Under the pieces are notes generated by a model. That model was not told the DNA's origin. It saw nothing but the letters and a program-made list of their open reading frames with translations, and did no database searches. This document shows positions 36,455 to 52,937 of a DNA stretch of 64,000 nt, in pieces (within the stretch, counting starts at the first letter, position 1; the number at the start of each line of letters is the position of its first letter). The stretch is from Phaeosaccion multiseriatum (Eukaryota > Protista > Ochrophyta, other classes): contig OZ218960.1 of NCBI GenBank assembly GCA_965112735.1, forward strand, positions 372,001 through 436,000, read 5' to 3'. The position numbers and the translations under genes were made by a program.

Positions 36455-36930
36455 CCTCGCTTGCCGACGCCAACGCGACTACCCGTACGTGCAGCGATCG
36501 CTTCTTCAGAGCTTCCCGCCGGGCAACCTTCAGATTTTGAGCAGTGGCAAAAACAGCGAAGGGATTCTTCAAGGGAAAGAGGAAACAGCCGCAGCTTTTC
36601 TCGGTCCTGCCCCTACTGCTCTTCTTACATCTGCGATTCGATTCTTGTGGGTGTAAAATTATCTTCTTTCTCTTCTTCGTTGTGCCTCTCGCCAACCTGT
36701 GAGGCCGGAGGTAGGTCCAACACGCGAAGCAAGGAACACCCAACACCACCTTTTATGGTGATTGTCGCCGGAAGGGGCTTCCCAACAGAAACTAGAGAGT
36801 GTCAAAAGGAAAAGAGGCTACTGACAGGACGCAGGACCAGAGGCAGAAGCAGGGAGAGGGTGAAACGCCGATACTAAACGAAAATCTTCCCACCTCCCTA
36901 GAGGTCCCTTTCGATGAGCAAGTGCTTTCG

Positions 36931-38489
36931 ATGGCGTCTTTCCTGTCCCCTGGCGAAATTCTACGGCTCCGCTTCCTCCGCCTCTTACCCTCGAGTTGCG
37001 ATTTAGGATCTAGCCTGGCCATCACCATTGGTCTTACGGACGAGGCAGGGAGGTTTCTTGAGCCCCACCAGCCATACTTGGTGCGCGTACGGTGCACCGT
37101 TCGGAGTGACAACGAAAGCCACGGTCATGCCCCAAGATCTCGGTCGATGGCAGCAACTAGAGGAGTGGCAGGAGGGCCTACATGTCTAGAATCAGAGCTT
37201 GCTAAAGTGGTGGCCACGGGAGATATTCTTCCCTATCGAAACCAGTGCATCCTCCGCCTACAGCTCCCTGAGGAAGGGGTTGTGCGGGAAGGAGCGCCAC
37301 TCCATGTAGTGGTGTCCGCGACGGCGTCCCTGCCCCTGCCACCACCCTCTGAGTGTGATGGCGCGAGAGAAGAAGGGGTGAGAGGAACAGCACCATCTCC
37401 TCCTCCCCGTCCTCCTCCTCCTCCTCCTCCTCCTCCTCCTCCACGTGGGCAAGGTTGGGGCCCCACAAATTGGGCTTCGGGTGGGGGTGAAGAGAAGCAT
37501 GTGTGGGTTGTGGGCTTGACTTCGGCTCCAATTACAGCCAACCGCCGCCAGGGGAGGATGGAGAAAGGCGAAGGATGTGGTTCTTCCAACCACCCTCTGT
37601 ACTGCCTGAGAAGCTTTTCGTTTGGGCAGGCCGCGACAGAGGCGATACGAGGTTGCCAAGTTTTGGAAGACGGTGACCGTGACGGGATAGAGCGTCAACA
37701 TCATCATGATCAGCAGCAGCATCAGCTGGGATGGGGGGCGGAGGAGGAGGAGGAGGAGGGTAGAAGGCCGTGCGCGGTGGGTGTGACGACGCCGGGGAAG
37801 AAGGACGACAACAGGACAGGAGCGCCAAGGGTCTTGACACCTGCCACCAGCATCCTCATTCGGGAAGAGTTCGGGGCGGGCATTGGGGCTCACGTGTGGG
37901 ACAGTGGCATCTTCCTGGCCCAGTACCTGTGCGAGCAACAGCAGTTGGTGATACAGCAGCATTGCACCGGGGGGCAAGGGGGGGAGAAAGCGAGCACTCC
38001 TCGAGTGCCGAGCTTGTTGGAAGAGTTCGGCAGCGGTATGTCCGGGCTTCACTGTCTGGAGCTCGGCAGCGGCTGTGGACTGACCGGCATCCTCGCAGCC
38101 GCACTGGGTGAGTGAGTGCCATCGAGTGCCATCGAGTGCCAAGCGATTGGTGTAATGTCATACGGCGGATTGTTCGATCGATCGTAGACTCTGTCTCTCA
38201 CACACACATGCACTCCCTCTCTCTCTCTCTCTTTCTTTCTGCTCCTGCTGGTGCTAACTGTGCCAGGCGCGAGGGTCATTCTCACCGAGAGAGAGAGCCA
38301 CCTCGAGCTGCTCCGGAGAAACGTTGAAGCCAACCAGGTAAAAAGCACATGGGTATAAAGAGAGTAGCGTAGAGGTATACGGCAGAGTGAGTGAGTAGTG
38401 AAATGTACAGGTGCGTTGTTTGGGTGCAATTGTCTAATCATCCCCCGTAAGCCCACGCGTGCACCGCACCCACTCACCCCGCACACACA

Positions 38490-42541: not shown

Positions 42542-43776
42542 CACACACACGCACACACACACGCACACACACACACGCACAAGCAGAGAGAAGTGTGTTT
42601 GCCCAACACAGCACAGTGTTCAGTTTTCAGTTTTCAGTCGACGTGACCTTGGTCAATATCGAATACCGAACCCGTACATGGACTGATATCGACGCTTCTG
42701 TACATAGCAGGTGTGTGCTCGGATAAGCAAGTGAGTCGACACAAATGCACACATAAGATGAGTACGGACCTTTCTGTGTTGGCGTCTACGACAATTACGA
42801 TGTCGATAGCATCGTACACGCCGTACAAAGGTCGGATGATGTTGGCGAGCTTCAGATTGAGCTCGAACCTCGCTAGCTGCCCGGTCAGGCATATTCCCAC
42901 CCTCCGTCTGTTGCGGCTTCCACCACCACCACCGCCGCCGCCGCCGCCGCCGCCGCCCCCCCCCTCTCCTCCTCCTCCCTCTCCGTCGGTCCCATTGATC
43001 GGTACTTCCTGCCACGAAGGAATGGCCATCTCCCAAATCTGCCTCGGGTCGGGTGGCAGGATCACCTTCGGCCGCATCCACTTCGGCAGCTGCATCACTG
43101 TCAGTGTCGCGTTCTGCTGTTGTGCCACCAACTGCTTCTCCTCCTGCTGTTGTTCCTCCGCGGCCACCTGTAGCTCCCTTCGGAGTTCTCCTCTCTCGTC
43201 TCCTCCTCCTCCTCTCCCTTCTACCCCTCCTCCTCTCCCTTCTACCCCTCCTTCTCTCTCTTCTGCTGCTCCTTCTCTCTCTTCTATTCCTCCTCCTCTC
43301 TCTTCTACTCCTTCTCCTCCTCCTCCTCCTCTCCCTCCTCCTCCTCCTCCTCTTCCTCCTCCGTATTCACCTCTATCTCGTAGATGTGGTACGCTCCGTC
43401 CTGCTACTGCTGTTGCGGCCGTCCTCTCGAGAGCTGTCTCACCCATCCTCTCCTCACTCTTTTTCTGTTCTTGCCCCCGTTCCCGGCCGTCAGCGCCGCG
43501 GTCCTCAGCTCGAGCCGAAGCCAAAAACCCGCCCTCACGATGAGGGACCAGTGCAAATAGCATGATTCCCACCACAAGGAGTACGCGGGGCGGGCGGTGG
43601 CGACGGCATTGTGGGGCTGGGGTGGTTGGGGGTACCATTTGTGTACGTGTTCGTCTCATTTCCACTTCACTGGACTTCTCTCCAGCAGGAGCAGCAGCAG
43701 CAACAACAGCAGGAGGAGGAGAAGAAGAGGAGCGCACCCTCTTACACCCACATCTACGTACGTCCCCTCTCTTCAT
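40134..43776 (-). CDS. Type II membrane putative glycosyltransferase-like protein
   Basis: Signal anchor [13 protein letters not shown]; motifs [38 protein letters not shown] over about 5 exons. Start codon uncertain. Confidence 0.7.
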
Positions 43777-44032
43777 TCTTGTGCGTGAGCTGGGAAATCC
43801 TGCACAACATACATACACCCTAAAGTGCCATTTCAGCAGGCCAGGCGTTTTTTGGTTTTTTGACCCACATACCTGCCTGTGAGTCGAATTTTCCACGGAG
43901 GCCCAACTGCCCCATCTGGTTGCTTGGAATATTTTCGGGAGTTGAAGATCAAGACTTTATCCTCTCTCTCTCTCTCTCTCAGGCTCTCTTCCGCGGACAG
44001 AGTTCACGCAGGAAGTAGGAGGGGGAAAGAAG

Positions 44033-45665
44033 ATGGCCCCTGTCTCGATCCGCACGCTCCTCCCCCTATTCTTGCTGGCACAGCCCTCTTCATCCTTTCT
44101 TCCTTCCTCAGTGCTTCTCCTCCCAAAGCAGCAACAATCACAACTTGCGGGATTTACAGGGGGGCTTCGCCACCGATGCAGCGTAGCCCGCAAGGGATCG
44201 GTATCAAGCGACGATGGAGGCAGGAATGGGGGAGGAGCAGGAGGGGGTAAGGGTAAGGGGGCGGAAGATCGCGCGTGGGCAGGAGGCGGGCCGCCCGCGG
44301 AGCCCACAGTGCTTGAGACGAGCCCTGAGGAAGTGTTGGACTATGTGACGGAGCAGGGCATCAGCGCTGCCACTCATTTCTGGATGGAGCTCAGAGGTGA
44401 CGGGGGGGGGGGTGAGAAAGACAGAGGGAGAGAGAGAAAGAGAGAGAGACAGAGGGCCAGCCTTACATCTACCCCTCCATTCCATTCCCTCACTATCTCC
44501 CCAGTCGAAGACGTCTACTTCCACTTACAACAGACCGCTCTTACACCCCGTAATGACTAACCACTGAACTATCCCCACCCCTACATCCCCCGTACTGCTG
44601 ATCCTTTCATCCTTATGCTTCAGGCAACATGTATGTCGAGTGGCTGGACAGAGTCAAGGAGGGTGGGGTCAGCGTCGAAGACCTCGGCTGGAAGGGCTTT
44701 CTTTGGTCAGCGCTCAACCAGCCCCTCGAGGAGATTGTTGTCAAGAAACTTGTCAAGTTCCCCAGGGGGGGCAGTGGCACCAATCCATACCTCAAAGCTC
44801 GCCAGGTGAGTGAGTGAGTGAGTGAGTGAGTGATTGAGTGAGTGAGTGGGTGAGTGAGTTTGTGAGTGGGTGAGTGGGTGAGTGAGTGAGTGAGTCAGTC
44901 AGCGAGGCGAGAGGGAGGCAATGGGTGAGTGGGAGAGGGAGTGAGTGAGTGAGTGAGGGAGGGAGGGAGTTGCGAGGCCCACTCACTCTCTTCACTCCCT
45001 CATTTAATTTAAAATTAAGTAATAGAGTTCCCCCCAGCTTTGTCTTGCCCATACACCTGACCCCGCCCTGTCTTGCCTCGCCCCTATACCCGGTCCCGCC
45101 TTGTCCGTGTCCACTGCCATCAACTACCATCCACTGCCATCCTCCCAGCCCGTGTCCTTTACGGAAGTGCTGGATCCCAAAGTTGTTGTGCAGCGTCTCA
45201 TGGAAGTGCGATCGCAAGTGGCCAGCGAACTCATCGAGGTACGTGAGTATGGTTGGGCGTGGTGGGGGGTGGTTGGGTGTGTGTCATTGGGCGTGTGTTG
45301 TAGCAGCCGCAGCAGAGAAGAAGAAGGAGGAGAGGAGGAGGAGGAGGAGGAGGAGGAGGAGGAGGAGGAAGAAGCAGAAGAAGAGGAGGAGCAGTAGGAG
45401 GAGGAGGAGGAGGAGGAGGAGGAGGAGGAGGAGGAGGAGGAGGAGGAAGAAGCAGAAGAAGAGGAGGAGCAGTAGGAAGAGCAGAAGCAGCAGGAGGAGG
45501 AAGCTTTCTCACAAGGGTAGTGCTTGCTCTCGCCTTTGGGTGCCTCTCCCGTTGTCACCCCTCTTCTTCTGACGCACCCACCACCGGTCTGTCCGAACAC
45601 ACCTAACCAACTTCTATCTGCCGCCCTGCTCTCTCTCTCTCTCTTTTATCTGCCGTCCTGCTCGG

Positions 45666-45697
<32 letters not shown>

Positions 45698-48014
45698 CGT
45701 GCGTGTGTGTGTATCTATGACTACCATCCCACTCTCTCTCTCTCTCTCTCTCTCTCTGATTTCTCCATTGACTACACCCCCTCCCTGCTACCCTCGCTCC
45801 GCAGGATCTGTCGAACGTGGCCCGAGAGAATGAGCTTCTTCAGACATACTTGAAACGAGCGTTGGAGACCCCCAGCGAGGCCAGAAGGTACGTAAGCATC
45901 ATCTTACCTGTGCCTAGTCAAAGCGTTTAATGGACTTACTGACTGACTCACTGGCTAGTTAAATGACTGTCTTGCGGACTGATATAGACACTTGTGAGTG
46001 AGTGAATGCGTGACTGAGTGACTGATTGACTGAGTGACGGACTGACTTACGGACTGATACTGACCACCTTGACTGACTGAGTGATACTGATTATCTTGAC
46101 GACGGAGTGACTGAGAGACTGACTGACTAGCTCGGATTACTGAATGGATGACTGACTGACCGCTGTACGGACTGGTACTGACTATCTTGTGTGACTGAGT
46201 GAGTGAGTGAGTAAGTGAGTGACTGAGAGACCGAATGAAAAGTCACTTCAGCAGCTGCCTGCATGAGTAGTGAAGCCGAGGAGTGAAGCCGTGCTTCCAG
46301 AGAGCGCTCTGTTAGGCATCCCCACACATCCGCGACGCTTCTCTCCCATAATCTCTCTCCATCTTTTTCTCTCTTGATCTCCCTCTCCATCTCTTTCTCT
46401 CCATCTCTCTCTCCATCTCTCTCTCTCATCTCTCTCATATCACTCTTCCTCTCTCCCTTTCCTCCCCGCTCATCACACCCCCTCACTCTTCCCTTTCTCC
46501 CTCTCTCTGCACTCTCCCCCCCCCCTCTCTCTGCATCTCTCTCTCTCCCTGCATCCCCCCCCCCCTCTCTCTCTCCGCTCTGTCTCTCTCTCTCTCCGTA
46601 TGTGACGCTCCCTGTGGACTGCTTCTTGGCAGGCTGCGATTGGCTCAGTACACCCCCACCATTGAAGACGGAACCCCTGCCCGTTACGAGACGTACGAGA
46701 GGTGAGTGAGGAAACAGATCACATCCAAAGAGCGCATGGAAGTATGTCGAGAGGGGCCCTTGAGCCTTAAGCAACCATCTTGTCTGGGCACACCACGGTC
46801 TGATTAAGCTTGCTCCCCCTCCTCCTCCTCCTCCTCCTCCTCCTCCTCCTCCTCCTCCTCCTCCTCCTCCTCCTCCTCCTCCTCCTCCTCCTCCTCCTCC
46901 TCCTCCTCCTCCTCCTTCTCCTCCTCCTCCTCCTCCTCCTCCTCCCCCTACTCCTTCTCCTCTCATTGCGTCACAAATGGGACAGCATGCTGAAGAAGAT
47001 TACCAACACGGCTCTTGCCAACCTCGAGATTCGCCTCAAACAGAGGGGAGATAAACACATCCTCAGATGGCTGGGTAGATTCGACCCAGCGCAGTTACAG
47101 GGCAGGTGCGTACGGGTAGCTGGGGGAGCGCATCCAGGCTTTGTATCTGTCGGACTCGCTGCCTCACTGACTCACACCCATGTAGACATTCACAGCGTCT
47201 CGCTCTCTCTCCCTTCTTAACTCACTCACTCACCCGCTCTTCTACTCACCTATGCTCTCTCTCTCGCACTCTAAACTCACCCACTGTCTCACTCACCCAC
47301 TTCCTCACTCCCTGACCCACTCACTCATGCACTCCCTCCCTCACTCCCTCTGCACTCACTCACTCACTCACTCCCTCATTCACTCACTCCCTCACCCATC
47401 GCCCACCGCCCGAGATCTCCCACTGCGAGTTAACACGCGTTATGCCTCCCACGTTACTTGTTACGTTGCTTTTTCAGCGGCAACGAACTTGTGGAGGCGT
47501 TAATGACACGCAAGCAAACCACCGTGAACGACATGCCCATCGAGCCTGTCAAGGTGAGTCTGTGTCGTGGCCTCTTCTACCCTCCTTTGCCCGCCACCCC
47601 CGTCAGCACCCCCCTCTCCACTCCTTCTACCCTCCTTCACGCTCCACCCCACCGCCCCGCCCCCGTCCCGAAGTTGGCTCTGGCATAGGCGAGCGCGAAC
47701 AAACAGCCCAATACACGAAGCCATGGCTGTTTATGGGAGCTAACCTCTCAACCCCCCTCTTTCTACCAATCTAAACTGTAACGCCCTCTCTCCTGCCTTC
47801 CTCTCTGCGTGCATGTGCGTGCGTGCGTGCGTGCGTGCGTCCGTGGGTGCGTGCATGTGCGTGCGTGCGTGCTCAGGTGGCGGCAGAGCTGATGAAGCTT
47901 CGTGAAGTGGTGGCGGCCAGAATGATCTTTGAGCTCGAGAACGTTCCGGAGCACCACGAGCGGATCTACGCAGCGCTGAGGAAGAGGGAGGGAGGGGCCG
48001 CTCCGACGGCATAA
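44033..48014 (+). CDS. Probable plastid-targeted protein with two tandem RbcX-like helical domains
   Basis: Exons 44033-44396, 44624-44805, 45149-45238, 45805-45887, 46633-46701, 46986-47105, 47478-47553, 47877-48014 join in frame. Presequence MAPVSIRTLLPLFLLAQPSSS-FLP. Repeats YVTEQGI..E..WL..RLMEVRSQVA and ITNTAL..WLGRF..EALM..LMKLREVVA. Confidence 0.75.
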
Positions 48015-48254
48015 GGATAAAGCTTTATGTCACCTCATCAGTATCGAACACCATGAATGGAATCGATCCAGGCTAGGTGGGAGGGGTAAACTCTTTTTTT
48101 CTCTTCCTTTCCCTTTCACTGTATTGTCTGAAATTGTCTCATCTGTATGTGTGAGTGTATTATATGCACCCTTTGGTGCCATCTGTATGTGTGCCGTAGT
48201 GCGGTGTTCAGTGCGGACAGTCAGAGAACCACTTTCGGGTACGGCCTTGGGGGC

Positions 48255-48692
48255 TACCTACCTACCCACCTACCTACCTACCTACCTACCTACCTACCTA
48301 CCTACCTACCTACCTACCTACCTACCTACCTACCTACCTACCTACCTACCTACCCACCTACCTACCCACCTACCTACCTACCCACCTACCTACCTACCCA
48401 CCTACCTACCTACCCACCTACCTACCCATCCACCTACCTACCCACCCACCTACCCACCTACCTACCCACCTACTTTCCTACCTACCTACCTACCCACCTA
48501 TGTACCTACCTACCCACCTACCTACCTACCTACCTACCTACCTACCTACCTACCTACCTACCTCCCTACCTACTACCTACCTACCTACCTACCTACCCAC
48601 CTACCTACCTACCTACCTACCTATCCACCTATGTACCTACGTATCTACCTACGTACCTACCGACTTACCTACCTTCCCTCCTGTCTTCCCAC
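48255..48692. repeat. (TACC)n tetranucleotide tract
   Basis: About 430 bp tract between convergent genes. Confidence 0.97.

Positions 48693-49259: not shown

Positions 49260-52937
<3,678 letters not shown>

Follow-up and report, generated by a model that had tools for sequence, protein, structure and literature searches.

A predicted plastid-directed protein with two RbcX-family domains in one chain, encoded in the genome of the ochrophyte alga Phaeosaccion multiseriatum

Ochrophyte algae have form ID Rubisco, the red type of the enzyme. RbcX helps to assemble Rubisco in cyanobacteria and green plants; it binds the large subunit, RbcL, and promotes the assembly of RbcL8. To our knowledge, the assembly of Rubisco is the only function described for RbcX (attributed to Saschenbrecker et al. 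2007). Organisms with red-type Rubisco have been stated to lack RbcX (PMC9833100, PMC6508576). The highest CO2 specificities known are those of the red-type Rubiscos of red algae and diatoms. These enzymes have so far failed to assemble in plants or in E. coli, a failure that is usually explained by unknown lineage-specific chaperones (PMC9833100, PMC6508576). Among green algae, an RbcX-like protein of Ulva localises to the pyrenoid via an added Rubisco-binding motif (bioRxiv 10.64898/2026.07.16.738900). Here we describe a gene on the + strand, at positions 44033-48014 of a 64,000-nucleotide stretch of the Phaeosaccion multiseriatum genome (GenBank assembly GCA_965112735.1, contig OZ218960.1, positions 372,001 to 436,000 of the forward strand; hereafter the window), whose predicted product combines a probable plastid presequence with two related domains of the RbcX family in a single chain.

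The spliced coding sequence of 1122 nt encodes 373 amino acids (aa) followed by a TAA stop codon, in a reading frame that is unbroken across eight exons; this gene and all its features described below lie on the + strand. Repeat 1 (44318..46666; aa 96-251, exons 1-5) has RbcX-like helices a1-a3, a β-hairpin insert and a long helix a4, as seen in relatives that were aligned with the window protein. Repeat 2 (46667..48011; aa 252-373, exons 5-8) is likewise an RbcX-like domain.

The relationship to RbcX is clearest in the sequence of repeat 2. An RbcX profile was built from 80 cyanobacterial rbcX loci, which were retrieved via a 53-residue RbcX segment and yielded 73 open reading frames (ORFs), and was compared by local hhalign with a repeat 2 profile that included the window sequence. 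Repeat 2 matched the 73 cyanobacterial RbcX sequences with a Prob of 91.6%, a P value of 8e-7 and a score of 45.2, more than 12 standard deviations above the scores of column-shuffled controls (12.3±2.6, maximum 21, n=60). At the sequence level, repeat 2 is demonstrably homologous to RbcX. Pfam searches of the relatives point to the same family. PF02341 (RbcX) was the top Pfam match in 9 of the 11 full-length relatives, with expectation (E) values of 1.5e-5 to 0.19, and these matches cover either a4 of repeat 1 or a1-a3 of repeat 2; one relative also carries a precomputed PF02341.21 database call. When the family profile was searched against PDB sequences, three of the four best matches were RbcX and colinear, but with E values of only 0.15-1.1. 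RbcX was missing from the results when repeat 2 by itself was run with hmmsearch against the PDB sequences; these results were headed by eIF3c and SmD2 (E ~0.3), and plain comparison of a profile with sequences is too weak here.

Structure prediction extends this relationship to both halves. An AlphaFold2 model of the mature part of a Chrysoparadoxa relative (predicted local distance difference test, pLDDT, 79; predicted template-modelling score, pTM, 0.73) shows in each half the order helix, helix, short helix, β-hairpin, long helix. In a Foldseek search of the PDB with this model, only RbcX chains reached a probability of 0.75-1.0, with template-modelling (TM) scores of 0.58-0.71 by target and poor E values of 0.2-2.4. 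Realignment of the Foldseek list by VIA-align placed RbcX in all of the top 17 entries (Z 7.8-10.4, 104-112 aligned residues; next Z 5.4), and all these matches of the two-domain model fall on repeat 2 and cover whole RbcX chains. Repeat 1, modelled alone (pLDDT 83, pTM 0.67) and compared with all 48,161 PDB representatives, gave five RbcX representatives as its top matches (Z 9.7-11.0, 102-108 aligned residues; next 6.8). The nearest named clusters in the ESM Atlas by language-model features were again RbcX (0.86-0.87). As modelled, both halves have the RbcX fold. The preliminary description of the locus had proposed two fused RbcX-fold halves, and this proposal agrees well with the structure searches on the Chrysoparadoxa relative (Foldseek/VIA-align), both of which RbcX tops.

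The two domains are also recognizably related to one another, as had been suggested from the letters of the translation. When aa 96-262 of the window protein were aligned with aa 263-373, the Smith-Waterman score was 63, a value reached by none of 500 shuffles (29.0±5.0). Profiles of repeat 1 and repeat 2 drawn from 11 relatives aligned by hhalign over 88 columns (Prob 84%, E 7.7e-6), and the halves of the relative were borderline when compared with each other by BLASTP (E 0.058). Because all species are colinear, the duplication must be older than the divergence of the species.

Relatives of the protein were recovered with exon 2 (60 aa) as a phmmer query against a database of 1.84 billion representatives. 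This search returned 10 clear relatives (E 2e-13 to 3e-8) and a weaker match from Vaucheria (E 8e-5), and further members were added by HMMER searches with a full-length relative. The named sources are the brown algae Ectocarpus, Pylaiella, Scytosiphon, Ascophyllum, Cladosiphon, Nemacystus, Choristocarpus and Discosporangium, the xanthophytes Tribonema and Vaucheria, and Chrysoparadoxa, all of them photosynthetic ochrophytes. The window protein is colinear with 10 relatives over aa 101-355 (E 1e-34 to 1e-65) and is about equally distant from all relatives recovered, at ~32-43% identity. It retains 38 of the 41 residues that are invariant in the family, the exceptions being a Tyr replaced by Phe at aa 186 and a Gly-Pro pair replaced at aa 314-315. 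When 12 sequences were aligned with MAFFT, no insertion or deletion (indel) fell at any of the seven exon junctions, and conserved residues run continuously across the junctions. One of the relatives is transcriptome-derived (MMETSP Vaucheria). Moreover, a 1.2-kb metagenome contig (L081:86-1054, + strand), the sole contig recovered by a metagenome scan, carries an intronless family ORF of 322 aa that includes no presequence and seems most similar to the xanthophyte (Vaucheria) sequence. Neither single-domain nor distant relatives emerged from word-indexed protein searches in which the query was the family profile or repeat 1 by itself. The Tribonema minus member (P0009) contains exact internal duplications of the 11-residue DLELIESENER and of VVQPLRVAA that are absent in other members; they lie near the columns of repeat 1 a4 and of the repeat 2 hairpin, and could be annotation artefacts or recent micro-duplications.

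The bipartite plastid presequences of heterokonts consist of a signal-peptide core, a Phe (or Trp, Tyr or Leu) at +1 of the cleavage site and a basic, Ser-rich stretch (the ASAFAP motif). The window protein begins with a segment that can be read in these terms. A signal-peptide-like segment (44033..44095; aa 1-21) ends in SSS and is followed by Phe at +1 (aa 22), so that the SSS|F junction at aa 21/22 has the +1 Phe of an ASAFAP-type presequence. Its hydrophobic core, identified by reading, peaks at a 9-residue Kyte-Doolittle value of 2.37 at aa 8-16, as in a signal peptide. The region that follows (44096..44317; aa 22-95) resembles a transit peptide with a Gly-rich linker and is not conserved among relatives; its first part, aa 22-60, holds five Lys or Arg, one Asp or Glu and eight Ser or Thr, the basic, hydroxylated and acid-poor composition of transit peptides. 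In relatives with complete N-termini (brown algae and Chrysoparadoxa) the aligned site is A|F or S|F. The heterokont-type presequence that had been proposed earlier is well matched, by reading, in its hydrophobic core, its SSS|F site, its basic stretch and the Phe site kept in relatives, and on these sequence features the protein is probably directed to the plastid.

The most conserved element of the family lies outside the helices shared with RbcX. It is the motif K..K.PRGGSGxNPYL in the hairpin of repeat 1, whose loop RGGSGTNPYL (44764..44793; aa 169-178) forms the tip of the β-hairpin insert. The G-G-S-G, the N-P and the L of this loop are invariant in 12 of 12 sequences, and the loop has low pLDDT in the models. 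The start of RbcX a4 presumably adjoins a peripheral polar surface touching the neighbouring RbcL, and a hairpin placed here would therefore emerge near the client-contact site. A Glu aligned to RbcX Glu32 is invariant in repeat 1, in an alignment of low confidence at this position; Gln29 and Glu32 of RbcX are residues that we take to be peripheral and conserved. The repeat 2 hairpin of the window protein (aa 303-328) is ~6-7 residues shorter than in all relatives, and this second hairpin may be degenerating in the Phaeosaccion lineage.

Predicted structures suggest that related shapes extend beyond the algae in which we find the family by sequence. In the ESM Atlas, an unnamed cluster of 90 diatom members (414 aa, no Pfam) superposes on the two-domain model with TM scores of 0.85-0.91 by query over ~284 residues, at a root-mean-square deviation of 3.0 Å. 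The whole two-domain shape is common to this cluster and our family; the diatom proteins are longer, and the comparison is one of predicted models only, without a match at the level of sequence. Two further clusters are of interest: one of 165 aa, labelled Rhodophyta, resembles repeat 1 in shape (TM 0.60-0.64), and in one of 168 aa, labelled mostly Bacillariophyta, 53% of the members carry PF02341. If the Atlas clusters hold up, the RbcX family would be commoner in red-plastid lineages than reviews state, and the tandem form would be one branch of it. In the full-text literature that was searched, which leaves most subscription journals outside its coverage, no RbcX-like protein is described in brown algae, diatoms, other stramenopiles or red algae, and the only paper on an "RbcX-like" protein concerns the green seaweed Ulva. 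A conserved tandem RbcX-family protein in heterokonts, with a predicted plastid address, contradicts the stated absence of RbcX.

What might such a protein do? The reading we favour, to which we would give about an even chance, is that it is a stromal, single-chain RbcX-type chaperone whose two domains pair like protomers and hold a segment of a client, most likely the form ID large subunit RbcL. On this view the gene product is a precursor in which a bipartite plastid presequence precedes two RbcX-family domains that arose by an ancient tandem duplication. The two domains would most likely pack within one chain as the protomers of RbcX do in the homodimer, where they form a central peptide-binding groove; the only indirect signs of such packing are the pTM of 0.73 of the two-domain model and the two-domain shape conserved in the diatom cluster. 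The protein would then be an assembly chaperone of RbcX type acting in the stroma. It would bind an extended part of a client that has just folded until partner subunits bind, and the client would most probably be the large subunit of form ID Rubisco. Read in this way, the tandem RbcX protein is a plausible assembly factor for form ID Rubisco.

Several observations count against this reading. The best Pfam score for RbcX was 25.6 bits (E 1.5e-5), under the gathering threshold of 27 bits, and the other matches scored 12-22 bits. The fold was modelled on the Chrysoparadoxa relative, which is 42% identical, with an 11-sequence alignment, and not on the window protein itself. Repeat 1 alone was only weakly similar to RbcX by hhalign (Prob 13.5%, P 0.002, score 26.3; column-shuffled controls 13.9±2.9, maximum 24.2), and is tied to RbcX because it aligns to repeat 2 (Prob 84%). 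The preliminary description had called for a comparison of each half with the RbcX profile; a match was found for repeat 2 (P 8e-7), but repeat 1 is weak on its own (P 0.002) and is linked through repeat 2. Members that can be recognized by sequence are confined to the group of brown algae, xanthophytes and Chrysoparadoxa and to this alga, and the links to diatoms and red algae consist of predicted shapes and automatic labels alone. Tyr17 and Tyr20 of the RbcX groove, which we take to be contacts for the C-terminal peptide of RbcL, are not conserved: at position 17 most members have Leu, and Tyr occurs solely in the window protein's repeat 1; position 20 varies. Peptide recognition, if there is any, must therefore differ from that of RbcX. 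Finally, the small subunit of red-type Rubisco has been proposed to replace the function of RbcX, so that a Rubisco client is not required (PMC9833100).

A different view is that a tandem RbcX-family protein of the plastid has been re-purposed for another client or ligand, such as the tail of a different plastid protein, a pyrenoid component or a small phosphorylated ligand, and has no role in the assembly of Rubisco. We regard this as a real possibility, though not a probable one. In its favour, the tyrosines of the groove have not been kept, conservation within the family is highest in a loop absent from RbcX, and the small subunits of red-type Rubisco have been described as making RbcX dispensable (PMC9833100). 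That the fold can be decorated for other roles is shown by the RbcX-like pyrenoid protein of Ulva (bioRxiv 10.64898/2026.07.16.738900). Nevertheless, the core positions aligned to W40, L41, F44, G53, R75 and E76 are kept, and the family is confined to photosynthetic lineages. We also know of no other function for any member of the RbcX family, which weighs against re-purposing. Returning to the assembly-chaperone reading, a stronger version of it would make the family the missing lineage-specific chaperone of eukaryotic form ID Rubisco, a single-chain RbcX pseudo-dimer whose added hairpins and invariant Gly-rich loop engage the RbcL8 core until the red-type small subunit, which has a βE-βF hairpin of its own, displaces the chaperone. 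We consider this specific proposal unlikely.

Two further explanations have to be weighed. It could be that the resemblance to RbcX is convergent, a generic four-helix arrangement without common ancestry, in which case the name RbcX-like would mislead. Helical bundles readily give middling Z-scores, the Foldseek E values were poor (0.2-2.4), the Pfam matches fell below threshold, and the hmmsearch against the PDB gave E values of 0.15-1.1. Against this, RbcX takes all the leading places in two independent structure searches and is well separated from the entry that follows, the hhalign P of 8e-7 lies far above the shuffled controls, and the nearest neighbours by language model are RbcX. Together with a Pfam E value of 1.5e-5 in a single-protein scan, and with RbcX as the top family in 9 of 11 relatives, these results make convergence very improbable in our judgement. 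It could also be that the gene model is an artefact or the gene a pseudogene, with exons that are not joined as proposed or are not expressed. Of the sequencing runs that contain words sampled from the locus, four look like DNA and three are RNA; in the RNA runs only 5-6% of the words occur, a share that is not interpretable. This explanation has to contend with seven of seven introns that are GT-AG, with a frame free of breaks, with junctions that show no indels against relatives, including the transcriptome-derived MMETSP Vaucheria sequence and the intronless 1.2-kb contig, and with 38 of 41 invariant residues retained. We give it next to no weight.

If the missing-chaperone proposal were true, co-expression of the protein would aid the assembly of red Rubisco in E. 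coli or in crop chloroplasts. Assembly factors of red Rubisco have long been sought, and the gene described here is a concrete candidate for one. Even with a client other than Rubisco, the family would show how a dimeric chaperone fold can be rebuilt as one asymmetric chain with new hairpin inserts.

As judged from its sequence, this locus of an ochrophyte (heterokont) alga is a nuclear gene that is both real and intact. No ATG precedes the one at 44033 in its open frame, which opens past a stop at 43946. Exon 1 (44033..44396; aa 1-122, phase 0) contains the start codon, the presequence and the onset of repeat 1, and is followed by a GT donor at 44397. Exon 2 (44624..44805; aa 122-182) is the one that retrieved the family as a phmmer query, with E values down to 2e-13. 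The onset of helix a4 of repeat 1 lies in exon 3 (45149..45238; aa 183-212), where partial Pfam RbcX matches of relatives are also found, and exon 4 (45805..45887; aa 213-240) was placed by splicing and by the alignment of relatives. The linker and the onset of repeat 2 fall in exon 5 (46633..46701; aa 240-263). Exon 6 (46986..47105; aa 263-303) covers the first two helices of repeat 2, a1-a2, and includes the W-L and F aligned to W40, L41 and F44 of RbcX; exon 7 (47478..47553; aa 303-328) encodes helix a3 and the shortened hairpin, in which the family-invariant Gly-Pro is replaced; and exon 8 (47877..48014; aa 329-373 and TAA) encodes helix a4 of repeat 2. Scripted splicing, after positions 43500-48600 had been read, showed that all seven introns begin with GT and end with AG.

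The eight-exon product given in the preliminary description is thereby upheld, with a clean ORF, GT-AG introns, colinear homology and no indels at the junctions. The strings it had quoted all occur in the translation: SSS-F-LP, VLDYVTEQGI, ELRGNMYVEWLDRV, RGGSGTNPYL and VVQRLMEVRSQVASELIEDL, and, for repeat 2, MLKKITNTAL, RWLGRF, GNELVEALM and VAAELMKLREVVAARMIFEL. It had also remarked that the gene is hidden in the track of ORFs. Single exons searched against Pfam matched no family, each being too short for any Pfam match, so that the gene is invisible exon by exon. A local tblastn of the product against the whole window returned only the eight exons, that is, one copy of the gene.

The surroundings of these exons are rich in simple repeats. 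Microsatellites with units (GTGA)n, (GGA)n and (CTC)n occur in the introns at 44806-44960, 45330-45470 and 46815-46945, and positions 46385-46438 in intron 4 are low-complexity, CT-rich DNA. The 3' flank (48240-48600) is packed with microsatellites, and a (TACC)n tract of ~350 bp lies directly 3' of the gene. Of the neighbouring ORFs, the one at 36799-38115 (+ strand) has a match to Methyltransf_16 (lysine methyltransferase) at its end (E 2.5e-11) and is probably one exon of an adjacent gene. Another at 51614-52672 (- strand) has a diacylglycerol-kinase (DAG-kinase) catalytic domain (PF00781, E 6.9e-9) and probably belongs to a lipid or sphingosine kinase gene. We saw no functional link between these two ORFs, Methyltransf_16 and DAG-kinase-like, and the RbcX-like gene.

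It is instructive to set the tandem protein beside the systems it most resembles. The Ulva protein UM003_0241 (bioRxiv 10.64898/2026.07.16.738900) is also a plastid-located RbcX-domain protein with an added element. It differs in belonging to the green lineage with form IB Rubisco, and in having a single RbcX domain with a C-terminal Rubisco-binding motif, with neither the tandem arrangement nor the hairpin loop. The RbcX proteins of known structure named for comparison are those of Thermosynechococcus (3Q20), Anabaena (2PEO) and Synechococcus (2PEM) and, among eukaryotes, Arabidopsis RbcX1 and RbcX2 (4GR2/4GR6) and Chlamydomonas RbcX-IIa (5BS1/5BS2). Each repeat of the tandem protein has the same order and lengths of helices as RbcX (PF02341), and in the model of the relative ~102-112 residues superpose on whole chains. 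The tandem family keeps the positions aligned to Thr19, W40, L41, F44, G53, R75 and E76. The RbcX proteins of eukaryotes are nuclear-encoded and plastid-targeted, and the sequence of the tandem protein suggests the same for it. There are also differences. RbcX is a homodimer of subunits of roughly 105-155 aa, whereas the tandem protein has two domains in one chain; both of its repeats carry a β-hairpin inserted between a3 and a4, and RbcX is without the invariant loop. Moreover, the tandem family occurs in algae with red-type (form ID) Rubisco, the very organisms from which RbcX has been reported absent.

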